64,000 nt of DNA, taken from the IMG/VR virus record IMGVR_UViG_3300044568_003163, positions 62,001 to 126,000 of that record, one strand, 5' to 3'. The position numbers and the translations under genes were made by a program. The notes beneath the pieces were generated by a model. It had not been told where the DNA came from and ran no database searches. It worked only from the letters and a program-made list of their open reading frames with translations. Shown one piece after another: positions 270 through 17,410 of this stretch (positions within the stretch are counted from its first letter, which is position 1; each line of letters begins with the position of its first letter).

Positions 270-535
270 AACTTAAAGTATTTGCCTACTTTATCTAGCA
301 TTACCATATCTCGATTATCTTTAAAGGGCAGATCATCAATATCTTCGTATAAGTTTTGAACAAATACGTCTGCTTTATTTTTTGCAATGTAATTATTAAG
401 TTCCTTACGTTTTAAAGCAATTACAATTTCTTTAAGTTCGTCGACAGATAAGCCATCCAAATCACCAGATCCATCACTATAAACTTTGATTTCTCGAGCA
501 AGTGTAATAATAAAATTTGGTGATGATTTAACCAT
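266..535 (-). CDS. hypothetical protein
   Basis: ORF track; overlaps neighbours in operon fashion. Confidence 0.6.
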   Translation of the reverse strand: MVKSSPNFIITLAREIKVYSDGSGDLDGLSVDELKEIVIALKRKELNNYIAKNKADVFVQNLYEDIDDLPFKDNRDMVMLDKVGKYFKL

Positions 536-707
536 TTGATTTGTTCATTACGATTCCTAATTTATTCATATCAGCAAGATTTCCTTTAACATACTTTTTA
601 TTCCATTCTCCGTATGATAGGTTATAATTAATTTCCACCCAAAGATTAAAACCGCCAAACCATCTGCGAGTCCAAAAGTATTTTCCTGTTAGTCTTTTTT
701 CGTTCAT
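528..707 (-). CDS. hypothetical protein (59 aa, not in ORF track)
   Basis: Manual translation MNEKRLTGKYFWTRRWFGG...; fills the gap between adjacent ORFs. Confidence 0.55.
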   Translation of the reverse strand: MNEKRLTGKYFWTRRWFGGFNLWVEINYNLSYGEWNKKYVKGNLADMNKLGIVMNKSNG

Positions 708-1000
708 ATTAATTGGCCGTTTTCAATTTCTTCGGATCTCTTCAATAAACTAACTTCCTTTCTAATTTCACGTCTCCACCATTCCTTTGTAAGCTTAGGA
801 TTATGAATGTCCTTATAAATAGTAAATGCTACTTTAGGTTTTGCAATTTCTATTTCTTCACCCCATAAAATCCATTTCTTACGTTTAGTAATTTCCATAC
901 CATCGTAAAACTCGGTATATTCATAACTGTCGCATTCATTAGCTTCGCATTGAACGGCATATTGAAATTTTCTACCGTCGATTTCTATTTCTTTTAACAT
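704..1000 (-). CDS. hypothetical protein
   Basis: ORF track. Confidence 0.6.
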   Translation of the reverse strand: MLKEIEIDGRKFQYAVQCEANECDSYEYTEFYDGMEITKRKKWILWGEEIEIAKPKVAFTIYKDIHNPKLTKEWWRREIRKEVSLLKRSEEIENGQLI

Positions 1001-1191
1001 TATTCATTAGATATTAAGGCACCTAGCCAAGTTAATTCAAGTCCAACAACAAGTATTCTTCCACCGATAGAGTCAAATAACCACCAATGCATAGGATTAA
1101 AGTCCATAGCAACGAAAGAACCTACTACATAACATGATATATGCAATAGAATATAAAGCGCGAGTTTAAATAGATTTCTCTTCATTATCAA
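1000..1191 (-). CDS. small membrane protein
   Basis: Two hydrophobic segments. Confidence 0.55.
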   Translation of the reverse strand: MIMKRNLFKLALYILLHISCYVVGSFVAMDFNPMHWWLFDSIGGRILVVGLELTWLGALISNE

Positions 1192-1411
1192 GTATTTGAT
1201 TTTGGGTAGTATTAACTGATGCCGGAAATAACATTCGAGTAAGTAACATCATTAAGAACATATCGTTATACGATACGAAAGGTCCATCAAAAATTCTTGG
1301 TACAGTAAGATTCCAAAGAATCATGGTTGGAAATGCAAATACGGCAATTACAATAGCAGCAAGAATAAAATACTGAAAAGTTGCACTTATTCCGAGTAAG
1401 ATTGTCTTCAT
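1166..1411 (-). CDS. small membrane protein
   Basis: Two hydrophobic segments; directly downstream of a promoter cassette. Confidence 0.6.
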   Translation of the reverse strand: MKTILLGISATFQYFILAAIVIAVFAFPTMILWNLTVPRIFDGPFVSYNDMFLMMLLTRMLFPASVNTTQNQILDNEEKSI

Positions 1412-1443
1412 AATAAATAGTTTATTGTTATATGTTTGAAAGA

Positions 1444-1501
1444 GTAAATATAATCAACATTATCTAAAAATGAAAACTTTAGAGCATTTAGTTATTAACA
1501 A
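1444..1501 (-). promoter_or_regulatory. class I promoter cassette (TTGTTAATAAC box + TAnnTTTR -7 element)
   Basis: gttattaacaa at 1491, -7 element at 1445; offset 46. Confidence 0.65.
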
Positions 1502-1508
1502 ATACAAC

Positions 1509-1534
1509 AAAAGCTCAATCTTACGATTAAGCTT
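1509..1534 (-). terminator. intrinsic terminator ending the tRNA array
   Basis: AAAGCTTAATC-GTAA-GATTGAGCTTTT hairpin with U tail on the minus strand. Confidence 0.7.
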
Positions 1535-1592
1535 TATCGAAGGTATATTAGGCCATACCAATAACCAGGACCTTTTCCCTAGGGAAATGTCG

Positions 1593-1675
1593 TGACCAAA
1601 GAGGGACTCGAACCCTCACGCTCAAAGAGCACCAGCTTCTTAGACTGGCGTGTCTACCAATTCCACCACTCGGCC
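1593..1675 (-). tRNA. tRNA-Leu(AAG)
   Basis: Cloverleaf with long variable arm; loop CT-AAG-AA. Confidence 0.85.
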
Positions 1676-1677
1676 GT

Positions 1678-1802
1678 AATGAGCAATCCTATGGAATTAC
1701 TGCAGTTTATCCAAAGGTCGTATATAGCTTGCAGACTAAGATTCTGCTGGATTTTCACCTTCATAAAGCTGGATATCAACGACCCTTATCGCGATTCTCA
1801 TT
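1678..1802 (-). ncRNA. candidate structured ncRNA
   Basis: Nested stems AATGAG/CTCATT, GGTCGT/ACGACC, AGCTT/AAGCT, GCAGA/TCTGC. Confidence 0.5.
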
Positions 1803-1803
1803 G

Positions 1804-1877
1804 TACCCGAGATGGGACTCGAACCCACACTGTACAGGGTTTAAGTCTGATGCCTCTTCCAATTGGGCTACCCGGGC
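1804..1877 (-). tRNA. tRNA-Leu(TAA), short variable loop
   Basis: Cloverleaf; loop CT-TAA-AC; weak anticodon stem. Confidence 0.7.
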
Positions 1878-1880
1878 AAA

Positions 1881-2003
1881 TTAAAGAAGTAAGAAAATGA
1901 ACTCCTTAACAGCTGAACGTTCAATAACTTTAAGAATCATTTTGCTTGTATCTCTAGGATTTGCAACTCCTATAAATTCACAAAATGCTTTTTGTTTATT
2001 CAT
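1881..2003 (-). CDS. 40-aa small ORF
   Basis: MNKQKAFCEFIGVANPRDTSKMILKVIERSAVKEFIFLLL. Confidence 0.4.
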   Translation of the reverse strand: MNKQKAFCEFIGVANPRDTSKMILKVIERSAVKEFIFLLL

Positions 2004-2044
2004 TATTGTTCATTTCAATTTTGTTATTGCATTATTAGGAATAA

Positions 2045-2116
2045 CGATACTATAGGACTCGAACCTATACCTTCCAGCTCGCTCGCCGGAATTCTACCAA
2101 ATTAAACTAAATACCA
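2045..2116 (-). ncRNA. tRNA-like element with non-canonical anticodon loop
   Basis: D arm and T arm (ATAGGTTCGAGTCCTAT) present; 6-nt loop GAGCGA lacks U33. Confidence 0.5.
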
Positions 2117-2153
2117 ACCTTTTTATCTCAATAACAAAAGATGTCCTTCTTTG

Positions 2154-2226
2154 TACCTAAGGAGGGATTCGAACCCACACTGTCATGCTCCTAAGGCATG
2201 TGCCTCTTCCGTTGGGCTACTTAGGC
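2154..2226 (-). tRNA. tRNA-Leu(TAG), short variable loop
   Basis: CATGC-CTTAGGA-GCATG. Confidence 0.85.
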
Positions 2227-2231
2227 AAATT

Positions 2232-2307
2232 GGTAAGTGATGGCCTACTTGTTACCATCTGTCTCTGTTTAGTTGCAACCACTAATCCTGAATGTAGAGA
2301 ACTTACC
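2232..2307 (-). ncRNA. candidate structured ncRNA
   Basis: Closing stem GGTAAGT/ACTTACC with internal hairpins. Confidence 0.4.
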
Positions 2308-2434
2308 TTTTGTTTTATGTTAGCTAATAAACATTGTTTCTAATGTTATTAACATCATCTTTTTAATTTTTGTACATTATAATATACATTAAGCCACAAT
2401 ATGACGTGTTTTGTATATTATAGTGTACATTTTG

Positions 2435-2507
2435 AGCTGACAATCAGGATCGAACTGATGACCTCTTCGATACCAACGAAGTGTTCTTCCAACTGAACTA
2501 TGTCTGC
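2435..2507 (-). tRNA. tRNA-Thr(GGT)
   Basis: CTTCG-TTGGTAT-CGAAG. Confidence 0.85.
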
Positions 2508-2515
2508 ATATTACA

Positions 2516-2612
2516 GGGTTGTTAATTACCTCTTTCGAGGATTTCGGAGTTGAACCGATAGACAAAATTTCAAGTTTCGTGTTTAACCAATAGTTGTTTG
2601 CTGAAACAACCC
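2516..2612 (-). ncRNA. tRNA-core-like RNA without acceptor stem
   Basis: GGGTTGTT/AACAACCC closure around D-like, anticodon-like (CTTGAAA) and T-like arms. Confidence 0.5.
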
Positions 2613-2617
2613 TTTTG

Positions 2618-2691
2618 AGCTGACAGTCAGGATCGAACTGACTCTGTTCCGGGTTACAAATCCGGTGCACCACCATTCATGCGTTGCCAGC
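2618..2691 (-). tRNA. tRNA-Thr(TGT)
   Basis: Loop TT-TGT-AA; cloverleaf. Confidence 0.85.
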
Positions 2692-2701
2692 ATATGTTTC
2701 G

Positions 2702-2772
2702 TTGGGATACTAGGTTTCGAACCTAGGCGGACTGGCTCAAAACCAGTAATGCTACCGTTACATCATATCCCA
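2702..2772 (-). tRNA. tRNA-Gln(TTG)
   Basis: ACTGG-TTTTGAG-CCAGT. Confidence 0.85.
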
Positions 2773-2778
2773 ATGTAG

Positions 2779-2849
2779 TTATCCGAGGTGGATTCGAACC
2801 ACCAATGACTGCACCAAAAACAGTAGTGTTACCGTTACACTATCGGACA
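2779..2849 (-). tRNA. tRNA-Gln(TTG)
   Basis: ACTGT-TTTTGGT-GCAGT. Confidence 0.85.
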
Positions 2850-2850
2850 G

Positions 2851-2924
2851 TGACCATAATAGGATTCGAACCTATAACCGCTGGTTTAGAAAACCAGTGC
2901 TCTATCCAATTGAGCTATATGGCC
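2851..2924 (-). tRNA. tRNA-Arg(TCT)
   Basis: CTGGT-TTTCTAA-ACCAG. Confidence 0.9.
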
Positions 2925-2995
2925 AATTAAGTTCTCCAACCCTGGAACTTATACATATCATCATTAAGCGGTCACATAGAATGTGAGATATGTTG

Positions 2996-3081
2996 AAGAG
3001 AAGATGGGACTCGAACCCACAAACCGAATTAACGGTTAACGGATTAGCAATCCGCTGCAGTACCATTATGCTTACTTCTCT
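2996..3081 (-). tRNA. tRNA-Ser(GCT)
   Basis: GCGGA-TTGCTAA-TCCGT; long variable arm. Confidence 0.9.
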
Positions 3082-3086
3082 ATAAA

Positions 3087-3187
3087 AAGTTAAAGGCAGA
3101 ATTCCAAATCTGCATTTTTATTCTAAAACGAGAATAACGTGAGTTTTATCGATACGTCTATCGAGGCAATTATCACTACTTTAACTT
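3087..3187 (-). ncRNA. candidate multibranch ncRNA
   Basis: AAGTTAAAG/CTTTAACTT closure with three internal hairpins. Confidence 0.45.
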
Positions 3188-3189
3188 AA

Positions 3190-3279
3190 TGGAGGAGAGA
3201 GTGGGATTCGAACCCACGGAACGCTTTCACGCTCAATAGTTTTCAAGACTATCCTAATCAACCTCTCTAGCACCTCTCC
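3190..3279 (-). tRNA. tRNA-Ser(TGA)
   Basis: ATAGT-CTTGAAA-ACTAT; long variable arm; CCA encoded. Confidence 0.9.
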
Positions 3280-3285
3280 ATTATT

Positions 3286-3363
3286 TGGGGTGGAAGACGG
3301 GACTCGAACCCGCGATCTCTAGAACCACAATCTAGCGCTTTAACCAACTAAGCTACAACCACC
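3286..3363 (-). tRNA. tRNA-His(GTG)
   Basis: CTAGA-TTGTGGT-TCTAG; G-1; CCA encoded. Confidence 0.9.
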
Positions 3364-3374
3364 ATGTATAAAAC

Positions 3375-3409
3375 AAAAAAGCTCGATTCATTTGATAGAA
3401 CCGAGCTTT
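3375..3409 (-). terminator. attenuator terminator 1
   Basis: AAAGCTCGGTTC...GAATCGAGCTTTTTT just upstream of tRNA-His. Confidence 0.85.
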
Positions 3410-3443
3410 GCAATTTAGTATTTATATTTTCACATAAGAACCA

Positions 3444-3518
3444 TCACACTTCGGTACTGTTTTCAGATCTTGTTAGATGCTGAAGCGACGTTAACGATAA
3501 TGTACTTGAAGTTCTCAT
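3444..3518 (-). CDS. putative attenuator leader peptide 1 (MRTSSTLSLTSLQHLTRSENSTEV)
   Basis: Lies between promoter and terminator; codons 2-18 are only R/T/S/L/Q/H. Confidence 0.75.
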   Translation of the reverse strand: MRTSSTLSLTSLQHLTRSENSTEV

Positions 3519-3550
3519 TGTTTGTAATTTATTATTTTTTATATATACTG

Positions 3551-3578
3551 TTATATGTCTAAAATTGCTGAGAGTTTC
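3551..3578 (-). promoter_or_regulatory. class II promoter GAAAC-N16-CATATAA
   Basis: Same motif and spacer recur at 6140, 9470, 44907 and 56117. Confidence 0.7.
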
Positions 3579-3603
3579 AAAAAACTTTCAATTTATTTTC
3601 TAG

Positions 3604-3700
3604 TGAAGACAATTGGGATCGAACCAATGGCACGCCTATGTTCCTTATCGATCATACCAATAAGTACTGAAGGTTGCTCTACCAACTGAGCTATATCTTC
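3604..3700 (-). ncRNA. tRNA-like RNA with expanded anticodon domain
   Basis: Intact acceptor, D and T arms; no 7-nt anticodon loop. Confidence 0.65.
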
Positions 3701-3705
3701 ATTTG

Positions 3706-3776
3706 TAGCGGATTAAGGACTCGAACCTCGCCATTGGGTTATGAGCCCGATATGCTACCAATTACACTAAACCGCA
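3706..3776 (-). tRNA. tRNA-Met(CAT), initiator-like, divergent
   Basis: GGG-CTCATAA-CCC; 1:72 mismatch. Confidence 0.65.
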
Positions 3777-3917
3777 AGATGACCTTAAGGATTCGAACCT
3801 TTAACTTGTTTCCTCTTTTAGTTTTGCAAACCTACTCAATTCTACCGTGCCCAATACACTATTGCCAATCGTCATTTTCGAACATGACAGCCTTAAGTTA
3901 ATTACTCTTAAGATTTG

Positions 3918-3989
3918 TAGTCCCACCGGGAATCGAACCCGACTTTTCAGGATGAAAACCTGATGACCTAACCGATAGTCGATAGGACC
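3918..3989 (-). tRNA. tRNA-Glu(TTC)
   Basis: TCAGG-TTTTCAT-CCTGA. Confidence 0.9.
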
Positions 3990-4077
3990 AATTAAGTTAT
4001 ATCAAATTCTCCCGCAGAGATACCGACCCATTGCTGAGCCAGAGAGGACTTGAACCTCTGATTCTCAATAACTAATT
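3990..4077 (-). ncRNA. circularly permuted tRNA-like RNA (YrlA-type topology)
   Basis: Order is stem, T arm, GCAA-capped acceptor-like stem, TA, D-like arm, stem. Confidence 0.55.
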
Positions 4078-4173
4078 TAAAAGAATTAAAGAGTAGAGCT
4101 CTTCAACGATTTCGGCATTTCAGCTGGATCTTTATGCCAACTTCCTAATCCTTAGTCCGTTTAATTCTTGTAG

Positions 4174-4247
4174 TATTATGTACGGGACTCGAACCCGTGT
4201 TATCAACGTGAAAGGCTGACGTCCTAGACCAACTAGACGAACATAAC
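4174..4247 (-). tRNA. tRNA-Glu(TTC)
   Basis: TCAGC-CTTTCAC-GTTGA. Confidence 0.85.
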
Positions 4248-4251
4248 ATTT

Positions 4252-4464
4252 TTAAGCTTCTTCAGAGACAAGTCCTAAAACTTCTTCTCTGTAAATTTTA
4301 TTCAATTCACTTACTTCAATATCGATATTCGTTTGTGGATATCGGTGAAGTAAAATCTTAACTAATCTGATTCGTTTCTCAGCCAAATCTTGATTAAAGT
4401 CCATTTCAATCATTGCATCACTTAAATGAGATTGAATTGCGATTGATAATTTGATAGTTTCCAT
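4252..4464 (-). CDS. hypothetical protein
   Basis: ORF directly after a class I promoter. Confidence 0.65.
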   Translation of the reverse strand: METIKLSIAIQSHLSDAMIEMDFNQDLAEKRIRLVKILLHRYPQTNIDIEVSELNKIYREEVLGLVSEEA

Positions 4465-4488
4465 AATGTGATTGTTTAATTTTAATAA

Positions 4489-4546
4489 GTAAAACTAATC
4501 AATTTAATTGACATATGGAAATTATTTTTCAAAAAGTTATTAACAA
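4489..4546 (-). promoter_or_regulatory. class I promoter cassette
   Basis: Box at 4536; offset 46. Confidence 0.65.
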
Positions 4547-4558
4547 TTTTAAAATAAA

Positions 4559-4732
4559 AAGTTTGTCACCGGCACAGATTGGTGAATACCCAAGTACAAC
4601 CGAATGTACCCGATACCTTACTAACAAAATGAACGGATCTGTGTTTCCTGTATGCGGCAAGTGACCTCCTTCCTTGCTTGTGTTTCCGTATCGATGTGTG
4701 CGGCAACATACCATTTTGAGTTCAACAAACTT
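4559..4732 (-). ncRNA. candidate ~175-nt structured ncRNA
   Basis: AAGTTTGT/ACAAACTT closing stem; GC-richer than flanks; follows tRNA-fMet. Confidence 0.4.
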
Positions 4733-4736
4733 CTTG

Positions 4737-4809
4737 TAGCGGGAGCAGGACTCGAACCTGCGACCTTTGGGTTATGAGCCCACTGAGCTACCAACTGCTC
4801 TATCCCGCA
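4737..4809 (-). tRNA. tRNA-fMet(CAT)
   Basis: GGG-CTCATAA-CCC; unpaired 1:72. Confidence 0.85.
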
Positions 4810-4835
4810 ATATACCTTTTAAGTAGAACCATCAA

Positions 4836-5027
4836 CTATATTTCTGTTGATGATTCTAATTGTCTTAATTTTAAACCTTCTTCAATTGTTTGAATGATGT
4901 CCTCAATTATTTGAGCTCGCGTAACATCAAAGTTACCATTCATTCCATTCAAATCTTTTGCATCAATTGCAATAGATCCTACTGACTTACCGTCTTTCTG
5001 TAATTCAATTACTAATGTATCAAACAT
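4836..5027 (-). CDS. hypothetical protein
   Basis: ORF track; class II-like promoter at 5050-5077. Confidence 0.6.
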   Translation of the reverse strand: MFDTLVIELQKDGKSVGSIAIDAKDLNGMNGNFDVTRAQIIEDIIQTIEEGLKLRQLESSTEI

Positions 5028-5092
5028 AATATAGCTTTTTATTTAATTGTTTTATGCAATTTGAAATAAATTGTTTCTCTTCTTATTAACAT

Positions 5093-5551
5093 CTATCTAC
5101 AGATTCTATCAGCTACATATGAAGCCGAGCATGCATCTGGTTTACATCTAGCGTTATAACCTAATGATTCTACATAACCTAAAGCAGAACGCAGAATTGA
5201 ATTAGATTGATACTTAGGGTCTGGATTAAAATCCAAATCAATAAATGCAGGTTTTTCAATATCATTAGCTTCAAGCCATTGAGCTAATTCAACTGAATCT
5301 TCTACCTCTTTCCAAAGTCTAGTAAATCTATCTAAGATTCTAGGAATTGATTTACGAGAGTAGATAACGTGACCTCCTCGATTACCGTAATGTAAAACAA
5401 TAACCATTGCGTAAATTGTATTTCTTCCAATATTTTGCGAATCTGAACCGATATACATTTTGATGTCTTTACCAGTTGCGAGTTTGTCCTTTAAATAAGG
5501 AATTAAGTCAATTACTTGACCGTTTGTTAACGATTGAAATTTCCGGTCCAT
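5093..5551 (-). CDS. RNase H-like protein, YkuK/DUF458 family
   Basis: IGSDSQ, RLWKEVEDS, IDLDFN and ADR motifs. Confidence 0.8.
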   Translation of the reverse strand: MDRKFQSLTNGQVIDLIPYLKDKLATGKDIKMYIGSDSQNIGRNTIYAMVIVLHYGNRGGHVIYSRKSIPRILDRFTRLWKEVEDSVELAQWLEANDIEKPAFIDLDFNPDPKYQSNSILRSALGYVESLGYNARCKPDACSASYVADRICR

Positions 5552-5571
5552 GATTATTAAATTTATGTTAG

Positions 5572-5642
5572 AGGCGAGTATAGGATTCGAACCTATGTAA
5601 CTGATTTTGCAGACCAGCGCCTAACCGCTCGGCCAACTCGCC
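5572..5642 (-). tRNA. tRNA-Cys(GCA)
   Basis: CTGGT-CTGCAAA-ATCAG; U73. Confidence 0.9.
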
Positions 5643-5647
5643 ATTTG

Positions 5648-5719
5648 TGACTCTAGAGAGACTCGAACTCCCATCTCCTGATCCGTAGTCAAGTGTTCTA
5701 TCCATTGAACTATAGAGCC
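5648..5719 (-). tRNA. tRNA-Arg(ACG)
   Basis: CTTGA-CTACGGA-TCAGG. Confidence 0.9.
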
Positions 5720-5728
5720 ATTATTTTG

Positions 5729-5801
5729 TCGGGAAGACAGGACTCGAACCTGCGGCCTCATGCTCCCAAAGCACGCGATCTACCAACTGATCTACTTCCC
5801 G
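5729..5801 (-). tRNA. tRNA-Pro(TGG)
   Basis: CGTGC-TTTGGGA-GCATG. Confidence 0.9.
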
Positions 5802-5848
5802 TGGCAGAGAGGCTTTTGAAGTGCCCTGCTAGTTCATCTTTTAATTTG

Positions 5849-5922
5849 TCGAATAGACAGGAATCGAACCTGCTAACTGATACGTCCAAGGTACCCGTGC
5901 TTAAAACCTTAGTCACTACTCG
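5849..5922 (-). tRNA. tRNA-Pro(TGG), divergent
   Basis: GGTAC-CTTGGAC-GTATC; atypical D arm. Confidence 0.7.
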
Positions 5923-5931
5923 TTTAAAAAC

Positions 5932-5967
5932 AAAAAAGCCTGAATCGGTTGAATGATTCAGGCTTTT
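5932..5967 (-). terminator. attenuator terminator 2
   Basis: AAAAGCCTGAATC...GATTCAGGCTTTTTT just upstream of tRNA-Pro. Confidence 0.85.
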
Positions 5968-5988
5968 ATATGATGATGTTACTTTATA

Positions 5989-6084
5989 TCATTCAAAAAC
6001 CTGCATACCATTCTCACATGCCTCAGGACGAGGGCATTCTACTGTTAACTGCGATGTTGTTAGTATGTGTGAAAGTATTAACAT
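5989..6084 (-). CDS. putative attenuator leader peptide 2 (MLILSHILTTSQLTVECPRPEACENGMQVFE)
   Basis: Lies between promoter and terminator; E-C-P-R-P-E-A-C-E core. Confidence 0.7.
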   Translation of the reverse strand: MLILSHILTTSQLTVECPRPEACENGMQVFE

Positions 6085-6139
6085 TTTAATTTTTATTAGC
6101 AAAGACTCTTTATCTTTGTTTAGTTCTTTTATATATCTT

Positions 6140-6167
6140 TTATATGTTCCGTTATTGCGGAAGTTTC
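6140..6167 (-). promoter_or_regulatory. class II promoter GAAAC-N16-CATATAA
   Basis: Exact motif. Confidence 0.7.
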
Positions 6168-6316
6168 AAAATTATTTTATTCTTTTCTATTTGTGCTTTA
6201 ATCTTAGCAATCTTTTCTGGACTAGGATTTCTATCTATCGTATACGAAACACCCATCTTGTCCATGTAATCGTAAAGAAGTTGCATATCTTCATTAGTAG
6301 TTTTAGTTGTTTTCAT
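6152..6316 (-). CDS. 54-aa hypothetical protein (not in ORF track)
   Basis: MKTTKTTNEDMQLLYDYMDKMGVSYTIDRNPSPEKIAKIK... Confidence 0.55.
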   Translation of the reverse strand: MKTTKTTNEDMQLLYDYMDKMGVSYTIDRNPSPEKIAKIKAQIEKNKIILKLPQ

Positions 6317-6328
6317 AATAACTATTTG

Positions 6329-6402
6329 AGCGGATATTCGGATTCGAACCGAAACTTCAGACTTGGAAGGCCCACGTGCTAGCCGTTAAACACCATACCC
6401 GC
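6329..6402 (-). tRNA. tRNA-Gly(TCC)
   Basis: TGGGC-CTTCCAA-GTCTG. Confidence 0.85.
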
Positions 6403-6412
6403 ATTTTGTTTG

Positions 6413-6485
6413 AGCAATAAATCAGATTCGAACTGACGACCTCTACCTTGGCAAGGTAATGCTCTACCAACTGAGCTATTATTGC
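6413..6485 (-). tRNA. tRNA-Gly(GCC)
   Basis: TTACC-TTGCCAA-GGTAG. Confidence 0.9.
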
Positions 6486-6552
6486 ATTTGAAGGACTTGC
6501 ACCTTCTGGACATGGTTTGTTTCGCCTAAGTCGCCATGTCAACAGACCCGAG

Positions 6553-6624
6553 AGGGCAGAGTGAGATTCGAACTCACGACCAGTTGATTAACAGTCAACT
6601 GCTCTACCGCTGAGCTATCCACCC
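6553..6624 (-). tRNA. tRNA-Asn(GTT)
   Basis: GTTGA-CTGTTAA-TCAAC. Confidence 0.9.
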
Positions 6625-6630
6625 TTATTG

Positions 6631-6741
6631 CAGGAATGTAAGGAATCGAACCTTAGCATCTTCCGAGACAGGGAGTAATTTATGCAGAATACAATCTTCG
6701 CAGATTGAGTTTTAAGCGTGCTACCATTACACCACATTCCT
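6631..6741 (-). ncRNA. tRNA-like RNA with ~60-nt replacement of the anticodon domain
   Basis: Perfect acceptor, D and T arms; internal CAATCT-GCGA-AGATTG hairpin. Confidence 0.7.
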
Positions 6742-6749
6742 GTATTTTG

Positions 6750-6866
6750 TGGGCTCATATGGGCTCGAACCATAATCTCTTCCTAATGACATCCTACCAT
6801 ACTAAAAAGGAATCGAACCTTAGACTCATTATCGAGAAAGCGCTTTGCCAATTAAGCTAATCGCCC
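6750..6866 (-). ncRNA. tRNA-like RNA with a second T-loop/D-loop inside the anticodon domain
   Basis: TAATGA/TCATTA stem encloses AAGGTTCGATTCCTT and AGTATGGTAG. Confidence 0.65.
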
Positions 6867-6872
6867 ATGTAG

Positions 6873-7004
6873 TGAAGAATCCTAGACTCGAACTAGGAAT
6901 GTCAATTAAGACGCCGGTTTTACATCCTTTAAATTGCTGAATAAACACTTTGCACAGTGTTTGCCTTTTTGGACCGGAGCGTTTACCAATTCCGCCAATT
7001 CTTC
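6873..7004 (-). ncRNA. class II tRNA body with ~54-nt anticodon loop
   Basis: CCGGT/ACCGG stem encloses a long loop ending TGTAAA; variable arm present. Confidence 0.7.
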
Positions 7005-7011
7005 ATTATTG

Positions 7012-7083
7012 TTCTCCCGCTGGGAGTCGAACCCAGCCTCATAGATTAAAAGTCTATTGCCCACACCAGTCTGCTACGAGAGA
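7012..7083 (-). tRNA. tRNA-Lys(TTT)
   Basis: ATAGA-CTTTTAA-TCTAT. Confidence 0.85.
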
Positions 7084-7169
7084 TTGTAAAGTTTTCTATT
7101 GCCAACCTCTCAACAGTGTAGAGTATTGACCTATCTATGTTTTCGCTTCATGTTCATTATATTATTTAG

Positions 7170-7243
7170 TGGCCAAGCCTGGACTCGAACCAGGGACCTT
7201 CGCATTATGAGTGCGCCGCTCTAACCAACTGAGCTACATGGCC
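7170..7243 (-). tRNA. tRNA(CAT), probably Ile2 (lysidine type)
   Basis: Loop CTCATAA; GGCC acceptor resembles Ile2 tRNAs. Confidence 0.75.
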
Positions 7244-7359
7244 AAAAATGTAGGGTTATCCGGTACCTACACTGATTAATGACAATCAGACCATCGTTCA
7301 CCACCTGTAAGAGCCTAACGATAGATACTGTACTTGCTTACACTCAAGTATCCGCTGGG

Positions 7360-7433
7360 TAGCGAGGACCGGGATCGAACCGGCGACCTTTGGTTTATGA
7401 ATCCAATGTTACTACCAACTGAACTACCTCGCC
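7360..7433 (-). tRNA. tRNA-Met(CAT), elongator
   Basis: Loop TTCATAA; GGCG acceptor. Confidence 0.8.
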
Positions 7434-7472
7434 AAATTGTAAGTTTTGAATGGACTTACAACCATTGATAGA

Positions 7473-7703
7473 TTATTGGTGATGAGGAATATACTTTCCG
7501 TTCTTAACTCTAACTGCCAGTTTGGTCACGTTAAAATTCCAACAATCAAATGTACTTAATGCAGATCTTTGTTTTGCAAGACTAATGGCTTGCTTTTCTG
7601 CTTTTTCTCGACCTTCTTCCGTTGTTTCGACGAAAAAAGTGGGAGCCTGAACACCAGTCTTACTGGTAGGAACTACTCTCCAAATTCTCAAATTAGTAAT
7701 CAT
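7473..7703 (-). CDS. hypothetical protein
   Basis: ORF track. Confidence 0.6.
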   Translation of the reverse strand: MITNLRIWRVVPTSKTGVQAPTFFVETTEEGREKAEKQAISLAKQRSALSTFDCWNFNVTKLAVRVKNGKYIPHHQ

Positions 7704-7783
7704 AAGTTTTAGCTAAGCTAGACCTATGAGGAATTGTACGATTTTGTTGACATTTGATTTATATTTTTTTATTATATGTTCGA

Positions 7784-8230
7784 TTAAGCCAGAGATTCAA
7801 TAACCTCTTTTACTAATTTTGTATCGGCAAGACCTGGAAATTTCTTAACGAAAGCACCCATAGTCATACCTATTAATTTTTGTTTGTTTAATTCTAAAAC
7901 AGAACCGAGTAAAACATTAACTTCAGTTTCAATTTCAGCTCTAGTCATTTGCTTTGGCAAGTACTTTTCAATAACACCTAATTCATTAGCTTCAGATTCC
8001 ACTAAATCGAATCGACCAGCTTTTGTAAATTCTTCAATAGATTGTCTACGTTGTTTGATTGTAGAAATTACTGCATTTAGAACTAACTCATCAGTAAGTG
8101 GACCAGCATGCTTTGCCTTTTCAGCATCTTGGATTTTTGCCTTTAATCCACTTAATGCATTCTTCGCAATCGCGTTTTTCTCTTTGAATGCTACTATATA
8201 GTCAGCATTGATTGTTTCTCTTAAATTCAT
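7784..8230 (-). CDS. GatB/YqeY domain protein
   Basis: KQRRQSIEEF..AGRFDL..E..E..VIEKYLPKQM signature. Confidence 0.9.
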   Translation of the reverse strand: MNLRETINADYIVAFKEKNAIAKNALSGLKAKIQDAEKAKHAGPLTDELVLNAVISTIKQRRQSIEEFTKAGRFDLVESEANELGVIEKYLPKQMTRAEIETEVNVLLGSVLELNKQKLIGMTMGAFVKKFPGLADTKLVKEVIESLA

Positions 8231-8246
8231 CTTTACTAATTTTTAG

Positions 8247-8327
8247 TGGGCAACAGTGGACTCGAACCACTCCCGTGAGGACCAGATTTACAGTCTGGCT
8301 GCCGTATCCGAACGACTTTTGCGGCCC
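8247..8327 (-). tRNA. tRNA-Tyr(GTA)
   Basis: CCAGA-CTGTAAA-TCTGG; variable arm; atypical D arm. Confidence 0.8.
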
Positions 8328-8336
8328 ATTATATTG

Positions 8337-8410
8337 TGACTCCTCTGGGACTCGAACCCAGGACTCCCTCATTAAAAGTGAGGTGCTCTAGCCGACTGAG
8401 CTAAGAAGTC
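8337..8410 (-). tRNA. tRNA-Lys(TTT)
   Basis: CCTCA-CTTTTAA-TGAGG. Confidence 0.9.
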
Positions 8411-8420
8411 ATTGTAATAG

Positions 8421-8494
8421 CAGTCCTAACGGAATTCGAATCCGCAATCTCTTCCGTGACAGGGAAGCGTCATACGCCAATATGCTGTAGGACT
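8421..8494 (-). tRNA. tRNA-Asp(GTC)
   Basis: CTTCC-CTGTCAC-GGAAG. Confidence 0.8.
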
Positions 8495-8581
8495 ATATAA
8501 AAATTATTTAGTTTAAGCTCCTTTAAACCATGTAATTTCAGGGAGCTATTTGAGCTTATGCATGGAACTAAATAATAATTG

Positions 8582-8655
8582 CCGAGATGACGGGACTCGA
8601 ACCCGTGACCTTCGCCGTGACAGGGCGACATTGTAACCAACTCTACTACACCTCG
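8582..8655 (-). tRNA. tRNA-Asp(GTC)
   Basis: TCGCC-CTGTCAC-GGCGA. Confidence 0.85.
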
Positions 8656-8714
8656 ATTTCTAATTTCACGCTCACACTATGCAGTTCTATAAATTAGTAA
8701 CAGTCTCATCTGGG

Positions 8715-8788
8715 CTCTCCTGACTGGATTCGAACCAGTAACCCTCACCTTAACAGGGTGTCGCTCTAACCGTTGGAGCTACAGGAGA
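8715..8788 (-). tRNA. tRNA-Asn(GTT)
   Basis: CACC-CTGTTAA-GGTG. Confidence 0.85.
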
Positions 8789-8811
8789 ATATTTGATGTT
8801 TTAATTATAAG

Positions 8812-8869
8812 ACAAATATAAACAATGTCATTGACATATGAAAATATTTAATCAAATAGTTATTAACAA
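8812..8869 (-). promoter_or_regulatory. class I promoter cassette inside the tRNA array
   Basis: TATATTTG at 8813-8820, box at 8859; offset 46. Confidence 0.75.
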
Positions 8870-8873
8870 TTTG

Positions 8874-8945
8874 TGGAGCTACCGGGATTCGAACCCGGAA
8901 TAACAGAGTGCAAGTCTATCGTGATGCCAATTTCACTATAGCCCC
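8874..8945 (-). tRNA. tRNA-Ala(TGC)
   Basis: GGGGCTA acceptor with G3:U70; loop CTTGCAC. Confidence 0.9.
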
Positions 8946-8955
8946 ATTAAATTTG

Positions 8956-9030
8956 TAGGAGATGACGGAATCGAACCGACGACCTTTTGCGTGTAAAACA
9001 AACGCTCTAAACCAACTGAGCTAATCTCCT
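8956..9030 (-). tRNA. tRNA-Val(TAC)
   Basis: TTTGT-TTTACAC-GCAAA. Confidence 0.9.
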
Positions 9031-9036
9031 AAATTG

Positions 9037-9110
9037 TAGGTAATATGAGACTCGAACTCATAACCTCCTCGGTATCAGCGAGGTGCTCTAACCAATTGAG
9101 CTAACTACCT
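9037..9110 (-). tRNA. tRNA-Ile(GAT)
   Basis: CCTCG-CTGATAC-CGAGG. Confidence 0.9.
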
Positions 9111-9117
9111 GTGGCAG

Positions 9118-9188
9118 CACGAATGGAAGGATTCGAACCTTCATCGACGGTTTTGGAGACCGGCATGCTACCATTGCACCACACTCGT
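9118..9188 (-). tRNA. tRNA-Trp(CCA)
   Basis: CGGT-CTCCAAA-ACCG. Confidence 0.9.
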
Positions 9189-9195
9189 ATTTTAG

Positions 9196-9268
9196 TGGTA
9201 AGGGACGGGATCGAACCGTCATCATCGGATTTTCAGTCCGCTGCATAGACCAACTTTGCTACCTCACC
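9196..9268 (-). tRNA. tRNA-Phe(GAA)
   Basis: CGGA-CTGAAAA-TCCG. Confidence 0.9.
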
Positions 9269-9274
9269 AAAAAC

Positions 9275-9308
9275 AAAAAACCTCTGAATTTTTGAAGATT
9301 CAGAGGTT
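9275..9308 (-). terminator. attenuator terminator 3
   Basis: AACCTCTGAAT...ATTCAGAGGTTTTTT just upstream of tRNA-Phe. Confidence 0.85.
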
Positions 9309-9335
9309 AAAGTATATTGTATTAAAATATCGATA

Positions 9336-9434
9336 CTACATCCGAATCACATTGCTATCCACATAATCATTCCCGGCAAACTTAATCGCCCAGTCAAAAT
9401 TCATGTTAATATTTATGTTAGTAGTAGGTATCAT
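9336..9434 (-). CDS. putative attenuator leader peptide 3 (MIPTTNININMNFDWAIKFAGNDYVDSNVIRM)
   Basis: Lies between promoter and terminator; composition matches the downstream tRNA block. Confidence 0.75.
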   Translation of the reverse strand: MIPTTNININMNFDWAIKFAGNDYVDSNVIRM

Positions 9435-9469
9435 TTTATTGATGTTTTAATATTGTTTTATATATACTG

Positions 9470-9497
9470 TTATATGTTCTAAATTTCAAAAAGTTTC
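9470..9497 (-). promoter_or_regulatory. class II promoter GAAAC-N16-CATATAA
   Basis: Exact motif. Confidence 0.7.
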
Positions 9498-9526
9498 AAC
9501 TTATTTTTATATTATTTTAATCTTAG

Positions 9527-10090
9527 TTAGTCCCACCAAGAATCATATTCTTTAGCGAAGATTTCCATTGCTAAAGCAAAGTCTTTACTTCTATTCAAAT
9601 GAGCAATTTTCATACCCATTATGTATTCTTTGTTCTTTTTTCTCAGCTGAGCAGGTGTATATCGCTCATCATTCCTATCCATCAATCTGTGGCAATCTGG
9701 ACGATCTTCGCAAGGAATAGTATAGTAATCTGACTTACCCCATTTAGCGTCATGCTTTTCTCTATATGGCTCGTCGTAGTTATCTTCATGCACTTTCGTT
9801 AATAACTCTAAACATTCAGTCATCGTTCGAATTTGCTTTTCGCGATTCTCATCGACTGTATGGCCATGGTCTTTAACGTATTTGATATGAGCTTTCAACT
9901 TAAAAAGAATTGGTTCCATAATGTAATGGTTATCCCAATCTCTATCTCGCCATACAATAGGCATCCATCGAATTATATTCTTAATTCCTCTCACAAAATC
10001 CTTGGAAGGAATCTTGACGTATTCCTTCCAATAAAATTTTGCATTGTCTACCGCTTCTTCAACGTAGAACTTAATTCGTTCGTTTATCAT
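9527..10090 (-). CDS. conserved phage hypothetical protein
   Basis: W.DRDWD motif and terminal WWD seen in large phages. Confidence 0.65.
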   Translation of the reverse strand: MINERIKFYVEEAVDNAKFYWKEYVKIPSKDFVRGIKNIIRWMPIVWRDRDWDNHYIMEPILFKLKAHIKYVKDHGHTVDENREKQIRTMTECLELLTKVHEDNYDEPYREKHDAKWGKSDYYTIPCEDRPDCHRLMDRNDERYTPAQLRKKNKEYIMGMKIAHLNRSKDFALAMEIFAKEYDSWWD

Positions 10091-10104
10091 ATTGATGTTA
10101 TTGA

Positions 10105-11421
10105 TTAACCTTCAGCTTCTTCGGTATCAATTACTCCAGAATCTTTTACGATTCCTTCAAGTACTTTGAATTCGAAAGACTTGAATTTGAATGTTTTGTT
10201 TACCAAACCACCTTCAATTCTTACACAAACTCCTTCTTTGATATGTCTAGTATCTAAGATAGATGGACCAGTTCCGAATGTTTCGACGGTGTTGCTGAAA
10301 TATTCTCGCAAATCTCTATCATCGAATTTATGAGTGATTGCTTCTAATTCGTTTAAGGTTATCGTAGCAACATGTGGTACAGTTTTTACACCTAATTCAT
10401 TACAACGTTTTACAACATCATTCCAAGCATAATCGATAGATTGACCATCTTCATTAGCAAATGTCATACGGTAAACATAAACCTCAGATTGAGTAGGTTC
10501 ACAACCATAAGAATAAGCCATAGACTTACCGTATTGTTTCGTAAACTCTTTATCACCCATTTTGGTTGTATCAACAGATGGCATAATTGCAGCTCCTGTA
10601 GATTCGTAACCTACAATTTCAAAATAAACGGTTTCACCTTTTCTTAAGTTACCTTTGAATAAGTTCATTGCTTTATCTCGGATGGTTGGGTCATGGAATT
10701 GATTTGCGGATTTTGATTCTCCTAAAACAACTCTACGAGTACCATTCAAATAAGCCCATTCTTTGTCGTTGATAGCTAATCCAAATTTAGTAACAAGTTT
10801 TTCTAACCAACCTAATTCTCTAGTCATTTGAACGTGACCAATACGACCTGAAGTACCGTGAAGTTTTTCAGTAATAATGATGTGTTGACCCTTTTCAAAT
10901 TCGTGGATACTCTTACCAAAGTGTCCGGTATCAAAATGTTCTTTGAACATTACAGAAGATCTAGAAACTCGGGTTTTCTTACCTTGATTTTCTCTAGCAA
11001 TTTTAGCCGTATTTGGATTTACATATTTGTTACAGATAGGTACACCTTTCCATTCGTCAAATTCAAATCCTTCTACATCTAAACCAGTTACCATAATGAA
11101 TCCAAAGTAATGTAATGGAACCCAGAAACCATCAGAGATTTCACCTCTAAATTTTTGAGCTCTTACTCTTCGGTTTGCATCGAACATTCCACCTTTCTCA
11201 TCTTTTCTAGCATTTAACTCGGCATCACGATAAAGGTTGTTTGCTTTACAGAACTCATCGGATAACTGACCATCAGATGGAAAGTAAACTCCTAAATGTC
11301 CTTCTAAAGAATCTAAACCAATTACTACTTGATTACCGTGACAAGTTGCTAATTGAACTTTGTCTGCGTTAGGATGTGGTCTCACGTTTGTCAACCTAGT
11401 GACGATTGCATTGTATGCCAT
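10105..11421 (-). CDS. RNA ligase (DRB0094/Rnl2-like with N-terminal OB-like domain)
   Basis: HPNADK, TEKLHGTS adenylation motif, EGVCVR, FKFKS. Confidence 0.85.
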   Translation of the reverse strand: MAYNAIVTRLTNVRPHPNADKVQLATCHGNQVVIGLDSLEGHLGVYFPSDGQLSDEFCKANNLYRDAELNARKDEKGGMFDANRRVRAQKFRGEISDGFWVPLHYFGFIMVTGLDVEGFEFDEWKGVPICNKYVNPNTAKIARENQGKKTRVSRSSVMFKEHFDTGHFGKSIHEFEKGQHIIITEKLHGTSGRIGHVQMTRELGWLEKLVTKFGLAINDKEWAYLNGTRRVVLGESKSANQFHDPTIRDKAMNLFKGNLRKGETVYFEIVGYESTGAAIMPSVDTTKMGDKEFTKQYGKSMAYSYGCEPTQSEVYVYRMTFANEDGQSIDYAWNDVVKRCNELGVKTVPHVATITLNELEAITHKFDDRDLREYFSNTVETFGTGPSILDTRHIKEGVCVRIEGGLVNKTFKFKSFEFKVLEGIVKDSGVIDTEEAEG

Positions 11422-11445
11422 GATTTCGTATTTTTAATTTATAAG

Positions 11446-11503
11446 ACAAATATAATCAATGTCTTCGACACTTGAAAATAATTTCTCATTAAGTTATTAA
11501 CAA
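11446..11503 (-). promoter_or_regulatory. class I promoter cassette
   Basis: TATATTTG at 11447-11454, box at 11493; offset 46. Confidence 0.75.
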
Positions 11504-11507
11504 TTAG

Positions 11508-11618
11508 TAGTCAGAACAGGATTCGAACCTGTATGGTGTTACCTAGAGTACTCAATACAGAGCGGTAAATCGGTTACGAACCATTACTCTTAGCGTCTTC
11601 CAATTCCGCCACCTGACT
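11508..11618 (-). ncRNA. tRNA-like RNA (Leu-like D arm) with expanded anticodon domain
   Basis: Intact acceptor, D and T arms; AGAGTA/TACTCT stem encloses ~35 nt. Confidence 0.65.
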
Positions 11619-11634
11619 CGATAGAACTAGCCTA

Positions 11635-11985
11635 TCATGATTGTGTAGATTTAATGTACACAATTATTCCAATGATTGAAAGAAAGCACAATGCTAATAC
11701 TGTTATTGCAGGTAAATAATCTTCTTTCTCTCTCCAAATTTTGTAATTATATCGAGGTTCGTTCTGCTTCCACGAATGGTCTTCAGACTTCTCAGACTTA
11801 ACATATTTTTTGTTTAGTTTTTTTAGGGATTTCCTAATTTCCTTTTTACATGGTTCAGCACCACAACAATAAAAAAATGATATATCTGTTTCGCTTATCA
11901 GCTTAGTAGTAGCTTCTTCCTCGCAACAATAACAATAATTTGGTTTCATATTAATACTCTTTAATGAGTACGGTACCATCTCCAT
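11635..11985 (-). CDS. Cys-rich protein with C-terminal TM
   Basis: CxCC and CCxxxxC motifs, hydrophobic tail; true start probably near 11949. Confidence 0.55.
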   Translation of the reverse strand: MEMVPYSLKSINMKPNYCYCCEEEATTKLISETDISFFYCCGAEPCKKEIRKSLKKLNKKYVKSEKSEDHSWKQNEPRYNYKIWREKEDYLPAITVLALCFLSIIGIIVYIKSTQS

Positions 11986-12817
11986 GCTCTAAACAGTCAA
12001 CGCAAAAGATAGTGTCTTTTACTTCTGGCCATCTACCAGCAGTCGGTTCAGTATCGTATTCAGTTACTTTGTGATGGGGTGTATGTCCGATTACTTGGTC
12101 ATAACCTTCTAATGCATCCCATCTTAATCTTCTCGGTCTAATCCAAACAGGACCTGCAAATTCTGAATATCCACCAGAATCTCCATCTACGTTAAATAAA
12201 ATATTTAAACGATATTGCCAAGCTTTATTGATAATCTCATCCGGCCTAAGATTCCAATCTCCTTCAAAATCTGCTTTGAATCGGAAACCGTCTCTTTTAA
12301 CCGTTGCATGCAATTGGCGTAACCAACCATGAGTTACTCCAGCATGAGTCCATAAAGTTCGCTTTAACCTACCATCGATTTCTCTTTCATGATAATATGC
12401 GAAAGTAAATTTGTCGATGTTTTTAGTAAACAACTCTTGAAAATCAAATTTCATTTCAGGTCGATAACCTGAACAGATTTGATCGGCTACAATATATTGA
12501 ATATCGTGATTTCCTAAAAGCAAGACTATTTTGTCTGGATATTCGGTTTTTAAATGTATGATTTCCTCTAGATTTAATTTCATCTCTAGGTTTTGTACAT
12601 CAAATGAATCTACGTAATCTCCAACGAAAACGATTTTATCCATTTCGTTAAAAATAGGATAGGTGTCTTCAAACGCTTCTTTTGCTCCGTTATCTACTTC
12701 CTGTCTCCAGCTATTATAGTCCGTTAGAGAGCCGAATAACACAGTCTTCCAGGTATTTCTTCCGTGGATATCTCCGATAGACATGATTTTCATTGTAGTT
12801 TTCATTTTATGGTTCAT
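11951..12817 (-). CDS. calcineurin-like metallophosphoesterase
   Basis: GDIHG, GDYVD, GNHD, THAG and GHT motifs. Confidence 0.9.
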   Translation of the reverse strand: MNHKMKTTMKIMSIGDIHGRNTWKTVLFGSLTDYNSWRQEVDNGAKEAFEDTYPIFNEMDKIVFVGDYVDSFDVQNLEMKLNLEEIIHLKTEYPDKIVLLLGNHDIQYIVADQICSGYRPEMKFDFQELFTKNIDKFTFAYYHEREIDGRLKRTLWTHAGVTHGWLRQLHATVKRDGFRFKADFEGDWNLRPDEIINKAWQYRLNILFNVDGDSGGYSEFAGPVWIRPRRLRWDALEGYDQVIGHTPHHKVTEYDTEPTAGRWPEVKDTIFCVDCLEHGDGTVLIKEY

Positions 12818-16342: not shown

Positions 16343-16400
16343 ACAAATATAAGCAAAAAACTCGACATATGGAAATGTCGAGTCATATAGTTATTAACAA
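16343..16400 (-). promoter_or_regulatory. class I promoter cassette with embedded hairpin
   Basis: CTCGACAT..ATGTCGAG; box at 16390. Confidence 0.75.
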
Positions 16401-16939: not shown

Positions 16940-17410
16940 TTAGGCAAGCATATGAAGATTAGTTCTCAAAGCTCCAATAGCAGCATCAAAGGTTTCAAAT
17001 ACCGGTATTCCTGCTCGTGAGCAAATAATATCTACATTACCTTTTCGCCAAAATCCGGTAGGACAACAGACAATTACACGTTGATGAATTGCAGCACATA
17101 CACCTAATTCCATTAATGTGATAGGACTTTTTGTGTCTGGTAAGATATTAAAGAATGCAATATCCGATTCAGTTAATTGAGTCAATTCCCAATTTACTTG
17201 ATGATTGAATTCTGGATTACTTTCCTTTTGTTCCCATGAAGAATCCCAATCATCTCTTCGAGGATTTAAGAAAGTAACATCTTCGTCTTTAAAGATTTCA
17301 GTGATTGCAGTTTGCCAATCTTCGGCAACTCCCATTTCAATGGAACCAGCTAAAAATACGCTGGTTCCATCTATGATTTGGTCTGATGAATTTGGTTTAA
17401 TTACTTGCAT
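16940..17410 (-). CDS. nucleoside 2-deoxyribosyltransferase-like protein
   Basis: VFLAGSI, NPRR, QVNWEL, SPITLMELG. Confidence 0.85.
   Translation of the reverse strand: MQVIKPNSSDQIIDGTSVFLAGSIEMGVAEDWQTAITEIFKDEDVTFLNPRRDDWDSSWEQKESNPEFNHQVNWELTQLTESDIAFFNILPDTKSPITLMELGVCAAIHQRVIVCCPTGFWRKGNVDIICSRAGIPVFETFDAAIGALRTNLHMLA

Follow-up and report, generated by a model that had tools for sequence, protein, structure and literature searches.

The first 9.3 kb of the DNA analysed here (referred to as the window, a stretch of 64,000 nt covering positions 62,001 to 126,000 of IMG/VR record IMGVR_UViG_3300044568_003163) contain 35 tRNA genes as predicted by ARAGORN, all on the minus strand, and the question raised by this locus is how a giant phage might control the output of such an array. 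Why phages carry tRNAs at all is still debated, with codon usage, loss of host tRNAs and escape from tRNA-cleaving defence systems all being discussed (PMC11025619, PMC11464382, PMC11555353), and the regulation of phages' own tRNA genes is an essentially unknown field. An earlier note on this DNA had claimed that a leader-peptide attenuator, listing the amino acids of the tRNA block downstream, precedes the largest block of the array; judged by sequence analysis, the layout, the listing rule, the reading frame and the pairing that this claim entails all held. We suggest that the element is probably a ribosome-mediated transcription attenuator that sets the transcription of a phage tRNA block, with a leader that tests the decoding of every amino acid served by that block.

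The unit occupies positions 9498-9269 on the minus strand, directly before tRNA-Phe (9268-9195), and is composed of four elements in sequence: a promoter-like motif, a 32-codon ORF, an 8-bp antiterminator segment and an intrinsic terminator. An RNA ligase gene (11421-10105) and a 187-aa ORF (10090-9527) lie upstream of the array on the same strand. The promoter-like motif, TGAAAC-N18-TATAA (9498-9470), continues into AGTATATATAAAA down to ~9456 and is presumed to mark the start of the leader transcript. Four copies of it are present in 64 kb, compared to 0.8 expected, and three of the four are located 35-60 nt upstream of the window's three leader ATGs; related promoter-like motifs also precede the leaders in L005, L014, L033 and L037 (numbers of this kind refer to related loci in other phage contigs). 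The fourth copy (28484-28456, minus strand) is found where one gene ends, ~55 nt ahead of the start codon of an ordinary gene, with no leader-terminator unit in between.

The leader ORF, hereafter L3 (9434-9336), consists of 32 codons and a TAG stop and encodes MIPTTNININMNFDWAIKFAGNDYVDSNVIRM, a peptide with no match in Pfam. Its last four sense codons contain the core GAUUCGGA (9348-9341) of the putative antiterminator 5' strand (9349-9337). After a spacer of 27 nt between stop codon and terminator comes the terminator hairpin (9308-9279), with an 11-bp stem and an 8-nt loop, which when folded alone reaches -14.2 kcal/mol (z = -4.1); it is directly followed by the U-tract TTTTTTGTTTTT (9278-9269), and the gap between the terminator and tRNA-Phe is 11 nt. 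No match at all to Rfam was obtained for 9269-9498. Two traits of the attenuator class can be recognised in this arrangement, namely a short ORF framed by start and stop codons between a promoter-like motif and a terminator, and a Rho-independent terminator between the leader ORF and the first gene to be regulated.

Codons 6-26 of L3 (9419-9357), the putative sensing core, specify every amino acid for which the downstream block has a tRNA, 11 in total, and no others. As the earlier note had it, the stretch keeps to the amino acids of that block: residues 6-26 comprise N, I, M, F, D, W, A, K, G, Y and V, exactly those carried by the 16 tRNAs encoded from 9268 to 6328; the reported absence of L, Q, H, E and C extends to the whole peptide, and the reported ATA codons are found at positions 2 and 7. 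The full peptide contains five residues outside the set (P3, T4, T5, S27 and R31). Against the phage's own amino-acid composition, of which the set of this block accounts for 59%, the 26 of 31 residues that belong to the set give a binomial P = 2.8e-3, and the in-set count combined with coverage of all 11 types gives P ~7e-4. The in-set run of 21 residues has P ~1e-4, for a stretch that was chosen after the fact.

The layout of motif, ORF, terminator and tRNA genes occurs in three copies in the window, with the same promoter-like motif in each, and all of the features concerned are on the minus strand. L3 is followed by block A (9268-6328), a series of 16 tRNA genes (Phe, Trp, Ile, Val, Ala, Asn, Asp x2, Lys, Tyr, Met-CAU x2, Lys, Asn, Gly x2) which also includes a YqeY-like ORF (8230-7784), a 76-aa ORF (7703-7473) and an insertion-bearing tRNA-like gene (6741-6631). 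Sister unit 2 (6168-5934), made up of a promoter-like motif at 6168-6140, a leader ORF at 6084-5989 and a terminator at 5967-5934, stands before block B (5922-3705; Pro x2, Arg-ACG, Cys, Met, Glu x2, Met). Behind sister unit 1 (3579-3378; motif 3579-3551, leader ORF 3518-3444, terminator 3409-3378) lies block C (3362-1592; His, Ser x2, Arg-UCU, Gln x2, Thr x2, Leu x3), and the tRNA region is closed by a terminator at 1535-1510. The terminators of units 2 and 1 are strong, and are located 12-16 nt upstream of tRNA-Pro and tRNA-His, respectively.

Both sister leaders also reflect the tRNA genes behind them. In the leader of unit 1, 17 consecutive residues are drawn from the six amino acids of block C only (simulated P<5e-6). 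The unit 2 leader (5989-6084) contains ECPRPE.CE, preceded by a run of block-C amino acids, and covers both the block B set and the block C set. The listing of B together with C, the latter standing behind the next attenuator, suggests nested or hierarchical control.

Related loci were collected from contigs of uncultured phages in IMG/VR and in freshwater (lake) metagenomes, with the ligase, the YqeY-like protein and an RNase H-like protein as anchors. A leader-terminator unit is present in all loci in which the beginning of a tRNA array was captured, i.e. L003, L005, L014, L023-L025, L027, L033, L037-L039, L045, L050, L053, L056, L058, L062, L068, L086 and L087. No unit was detected in the arrays of L089 and L090, where the fetched DNA does not reach back to the first tRNA gene or the sequence around that point is of a different kind. 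Removal of near-duplicates left 13 units, three from the window and ten from relatives, which represent fewer than 13 independent events because several of them are homologous. In all 13, the spacer from leader stop to terminator measures 21-34 nt and the terminator stem 10-14 bp; the first tRNA follows 8-28 nt past the terminator in 9 of 12 measured units and after 93-617 nt in the other three. The L3 ORF itself is conserved in L003, L027, L037, L005, L038 and L068, with length changes that keep the frame.

A megablast search with positions 9000-12000 against GenBank phages returned no match, and the closest cultured phage by RNA ligase protein, Vibrio phage 2.275.O (46% identity), has no tRNAs adjoining its ligase. 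The YqeY and RNA ligase neighbourhoods of Xanthomonas phage XacN1 and Bacillus phage Kirov contain no tRNA genes, and therefore no cultured example of the unit was found. When the 187-aa neighbouring gene was used as an anchor, only the same phage and one close relative were recovered. Between tRNA genes of two of the relatives there are paralogous ORFs of ~210 aa (L005, 3271-3903 and 4281-4916; L014, 17371-18009), whose N-terminus appears GIY-YIG-like by eye, and which are probably homing endonucleases that reshuffle the arrays.

Across the units, each leader covers the full amino-acid set of its own block (13/13 units), compared to 37/156 for non-cognate leader-block pairs, with no case of a block amino acid missing from the leader core. 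Altogether 268 of 377 leader residues belong to the set of the leader's own block, while 1e5 permutations of leaders among blocks gave a mean of 173 and a maximum of 249. For the seven units first tested, the true assignment of leaders to blocks was the best of all 5040 permutations, and with 12-13 units the observed value was not reached in 1e5 to 2e5 permutations. Codons cognate to the downstream supply, a further trait of the attenuator class, are present at permutation P<1e-5, in the form of a list of many amino acids with no single run.

The content of the leader shifts along with that of the block from one phage to another, as can be seen for Trp, Cys, Glu, Gln and Pro. The block of L005 has Cys and Pro beside His, Ser, Gln, Arg, Thr and Leu, and its leader gains C and P; in L068, Gln, Arg and Glu are served by the block and Trp is not, and the leader correspondingly contains Q, R and E and lacks W. 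The leader core of L058, whose block encodes tRNAs for Phe, Val, Trp and Ile, is made up of these four amino acids and A, and in L045, with a single block of 19 amino-acid types, a 48-aa leader holds all 20 amino acids. Concordance between leader and block is perfect for Cys, Asp and Phe. There are two exceptions for Trp, of which that in L005 is explained by the near-identical contig L038, which does carry a Trp tRNA, and that in L037 concerns a block which runs off the contig end. The listing rule also correctly predicted the start in L087: counted from its ATG, the ORF is too short to cover the block, and extension to an in-frame GTG start gives a 42-residue leader covering all 15 types. 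Such predictive use means that the rule could help in annotating tRNA arrays and in detecting tRNA genes missed by programs.

This signal is specific to the frame and to the middle part of the leaders. The fraction of in-set residues is 0.71 in the leader frame versus 0.39-0.53 in the other five frames, and residues outside the set make up 56% of positions 2-5, where a recurring MKT/MQT/MRT-like start is seen, 52% of the last five codons and 19% of the core. The richness of the last five codons in such residues can be attributed to the constraint imposed by the putative antiterminator pairing. The match does not have to be exact, as L003, a 91%-identical relative, keeps an identical L3 leader in front of a block shortened to Phe, Trp, Ile and others; the shortened block (L003 4343-7600) joins sequence matching the end of block B, which suggests a recent deletion, with an assembly join as a further possibility. 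At the level of codons, 74 leader codons can be decoded by block tRNAs under strict wobble rules, compared to 58.7 expected (z = 3.2), and no excess is seen under relaxed wobble rules; codon-anticodon matching is only suggestive, since it is significant under the strict rules only. Examples of it are the AGA in the leader of unit 1, corresponding to tRNA-Arg-UCU in block C, and the CGT in the leader of unit 2, corresponding to tRNA-Arg-ACG in block B.

The pairing described in the earlier note was likewise confirmed: on the minus strand, GAUUCGGA (9348-9341) is complementary to UCUGAAUC (9304-9297) over 8 bp, one of them G-U. The target is the loop-proximal part of the terminator 5' arm, and the two segments pair in the predicted fold once the terminator 3' arm is withheld. 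Under the same treatment, the minimum-energy fold pairs the leader 3' end with the terminator 5' arm in each of the seven units first examined. By itself the L3 antiterminator, at -10.3 kcal/mol (z = -0.4), is unremarkable and weaker than the terminator; the case for it is comparative, and comes from covariation across related loci. A multiple alignment of the divergent leaders was too poor in the stems for column-wise counting of pairs, and a permutation test on duplexes across units was therefore used. The duplexes of each leader tail with its own 5' arm sum to -136.7 kcal/mol, while 1e5 permutations yielded a mean of -83.7 and a best value of -132.1 (P<1e-5). The best tail-arm duplex is positioned at -21 to +4 nt of the stop codon in 11 of 12 units and just past the stop in the twelfth. 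Stem sequences vary between units, and the leader tails vary along with them; in L027, a change of CGG to CAG in the antiterminator converts a G-U pair into A-U.

We then considered the ribosome in the form of a masking fold. With the A site placed at codons 1-25 of L3, the model sequesters ~80% of the terminator 5' arm, and from codon 26 to the stop codon ~20%, so that the predicted switch at codon 25/26 falls at the end of the in-set run. Most other units switch like L3 in this model; sister unit 1 shows no clear switch. Pairing, permutation and masking model together point to an antiterminator which would exclude the terminator depending on the position of the ribosome, as is typical of the attenuator class. 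The full-length fold of the L3 unit contains a hairpin inside the ORF and no pairing that sequesters 9348-9341, and shows no clear anti-antiterminator or pause (1:2) hairpin.

Leader translation, on which this scheme depends, would have to start without a Shine-Dalgarno (SD) sequence, which is absent from the leaders as it is from 41 of the 44 large minus-strand genes of the phage (an SD-like 4-mer is found in 3/44). Leader starts and ordinary genes share an A-rich upstream context. As the ordinary genes are also devoid of SD sequences, their absence is no objection to translation of the leaders. The host apparently uses SD-independent initiation, and our guess is that it belongs to the Bacteroidota. 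In many genes of the phage the ATG is preceded, at a distance of 10-15 nt, by a TGTCTTATAAAT-like motif that may represent a phage-specific promoter giving very short 5' UTRs. Terminators after ordinary genes (16359-16384, 18970-18995, 22518-22543, 30067-30092 and 43776-43801, minus strand) share a near-identical stem, GACTCGATAT...ATATCGAGTT, and form a family that differs from the terminators of the leader units.

On the basis of these observations, we propose the following sequence of events. Transcription would begin at the promoter-like motif near 9498-9456, and a ribosome would translate the 32-codon leader as RNA polymerase nears the terminator at 9308-9279. If charged tRNA for a codon of the core is scarce (about codons 2-25, with at least one codon per amino acid), decoding would slow and the ribosome stall upstream of 9348; GAUUCGGA would be left free to pair with the terminator 5' arm, the hairpin would be blocked, and polymerase would read through into tRNA-Phe and the 15 tRNA genes behind it. 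With fast decoding, the ribosome would reach the last codons or the stop and cover GAUUCGGA, the terminator would form and the transcript would end at 9278-9269. The outcome would be a negative feedback loop in which phage tRNA is made when decoding capacity is low, and which shuts off once supply is restored. We infer translation of the leader, coupling between polymerase and ribosome and a response in this direction, with read-through rising upon slow decoding of leader codons. Since the list equals the block content, the natural signal would be decoding capacity for the listed amino acids, that is, tRNA supply and not amino-acid supply, and the output would be a larger amount of just those tRNAs. 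Low capacity could follow the loss or cleavage of host tRNA; given the nearby RNA ligase and YqeY-like genes and recent literature on tRNA-cleaving defences and how phage tRNAs counteract them (PMC11464382, PMC11555353), host tRNA loss is a plausible trigger.

The closest competing explanation retains the attenuator and changes its input: the signal would be amino-acid starvation or the general rate of translation, with the list acting as a broad codon sample. A stalled ribosome cannot tell a missing tRNA from an uncharged one, charging is what classical attenuators sense, and the geometry of the antiterminator is compatible with either signal. We nevertheless consider this unlikely, as a general sensor has no need of a block-specific list, while a single genome here has three lists matching three blocks, lists track block content across phages, and extra tRNA gives no relief from amino-acid starvation. 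A model of the T-box kind, in which leader codons pair with tRNA anticodons and the RNA senses tRNA directly without a ribosome, would also place an element with cognate codons before tRNA-related genes. It is highly improbable in view of a list bounded by start and stop codons, a signal confined to one reading frame, and a stop-to-terminator distance conserved at 21-34 nt, as expected if the position of a ribosome is read; neither a T-box nor any other Rfam family was found in the element.

Could the composition of the leader then be devoid of regulatory meaning? The ORF might encode a functional micropeptide, followed by a leaky terminator or by a hairpin for processing or insulation, and it is true that residue order is partly conserved between the window, L037 and L005 (an NF.WA..FA.GN..Y pattern) and that strong hairpins before tRNAs could serve RNA processing. 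However, this would leave unexplained the full coverage of the block in 13/13 units, the way in which W, C, P, E and Q come and go with the matching tRNA genes and the complementarity between the ORF tail and its own terminator arm, and with a peptide lacking any Pfam match we regard it as very unlikely. Least credible of all is a spurious AT-rich ORF that happens to lie beside a terminator. AT-rich genomes generally encode much N, I, K, F, Y and D, the block-A set is more than half of the background, and the 21-residue stretch was picked post hoc, but the run of 21 has a P of the order of 1e-4 for the L3 unit alone, the signal is frame-specific, and the permutation tests (best of 5040; none in 1e5 to 2e5) effectively reject chance.

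In the attenuators of bacterial amino-acid operons (trp, his, phe, leu, thr and ilvGMEDA), too, regulatory codons stand in a short leader ORF that is translated, an intrinsic terminator precedes the first gene under control, and ribosome position decides whether an alternative antiterminator helix forms. Leaders of thr and ilv mix two or three amino acids. Theirs are, however, runs of single amino acids, whereas the phage leaders list 4-20, mostly once to a few times each, in a list equal to the content of the downstream tRNA block; also, no 1:2 anti-antiterminator is evident here. The theory of leader-peptide attenuation has been set out elsewhere (PMC1183508). Attenuators of this class act on biosynthetic or aminoacyl-tRNA synthetase genes, while the present unit is followed by 16 tRNA genes together with a YqeY-like ORF and a small unassigned ORF, and it is because the regulated genes are tRNA genes that the element differs from known attenuators as a new variant. 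The best reading of the sequence data is classical ribosome-mediated attenuation in a new variant, applied to tRNA genes.

The pheST attenuator of E. coli places phenylalanyl-tRNA synthetase under leader-peptide control by the supply of charged tRNA. Like the phage units, it is a leader-peptide attenuator on a component of the decoding apparatus, but it involves one amino acid, a protein-coding target and a cellular gene. T-boxes resemble the phage units in coupling tRNA status to terminator read-through upstream of tRNA-related genes, and differ in that no ribosome takes part, the specifier codon and the T-box sequence binding the tRNA directly; the phage units instead have a framed ORF. No T-box match was obtained with Rfam over positions 1-10200 at E<=1, and none of the Rfam leader families matched at gathering score. 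Unit 2 gave sub-threshold matches to Thr_leader (25.2 bits vs 55) and to the trpB motif (29.7 vs a threshold of 59); over the region, tRNAs and sub-threshold terminator-like matches were the only other returns.

T4, T5 and other tRNA-rich phages likewise have tRNA arrays with small ORFs, homing-endonuclease genes and their own promoters and terminators. To our knowledge, no leader-peptide control has been described for tRNA clusters of the T4/T5 type. Our full-text search of non-subscription literature, phage-tRNA papers included, found no leader-peptide control of tRNA genes. Strong promoters of phage tRNA genes have been described (PMC11555353).

If our reading is correct, attenuation has here been put to a new use, as a supply-and-demand controller for tRNAs themselves, and an infecting phage would adjust its tRNA output to the condition of the host tRNA pool. 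In slightly more guarded terms, we also think it likely that leaders of this catalogue type ('tRNA-demand sensors'), with one or more codons for each amino acid of the block behind them, gate tRNA blocks by attenuation, one block at a time and only in response to slow decoding of the matching codons, can be nested, and are spread across diverse freshwater jumbo-phage lineages; the slowing could follow host tRNA depletion or the action of an anticodon-nuclease defence. As compact parts, the units could be used in reporters of decoding capacity for a chosen amino acid.

Several further features of the arrays were noted. Rfam detected three tRNA-like genes beyond the default ARAGORN run, all on the minus strand (2618-2691, 3603-3700 and 6631-6741). 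The first has a UGU (Thr) anticodon by eye; the other two, with insertions of ~25-40 nt, are perhaps intron-containing or degenerate. The CAU tRNAs of block B (3705-3776 and 4736-4809, minus strand) have GGG/CCC anticodon stems and are initiator-like, and those of block A (7169-7243 and 7356-7434, minus strand) are without such stems. In the tRNA at 7169-7243, the CAUAAU loop context resembles by eye that of tRNA-Ile2, a label given to it in the earlier note and one which we take to be plausible. Anticodon loops of 8 nt, for which ARAGORN reports four-base anticodons (agcg, ctga, gaaa), occur in tRNAs of the window and relatives (window 2044-2116, minus strand; L003 6971-7057; L024 14181-14257; L086 8615; L087 13980), and the arrays of relatives also include a UUA suppressor-like tRNA and a UCA tRNA called as SeC. 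Elsewhere on the minus strand of the window, the phage encodes a GAF-PAS-PAS sensor histidine kinase-like protein (37961-39886), a nicotinate phosphoribosyltransferase (17397-18932) and a collagen-repeat protein (33722-34879).
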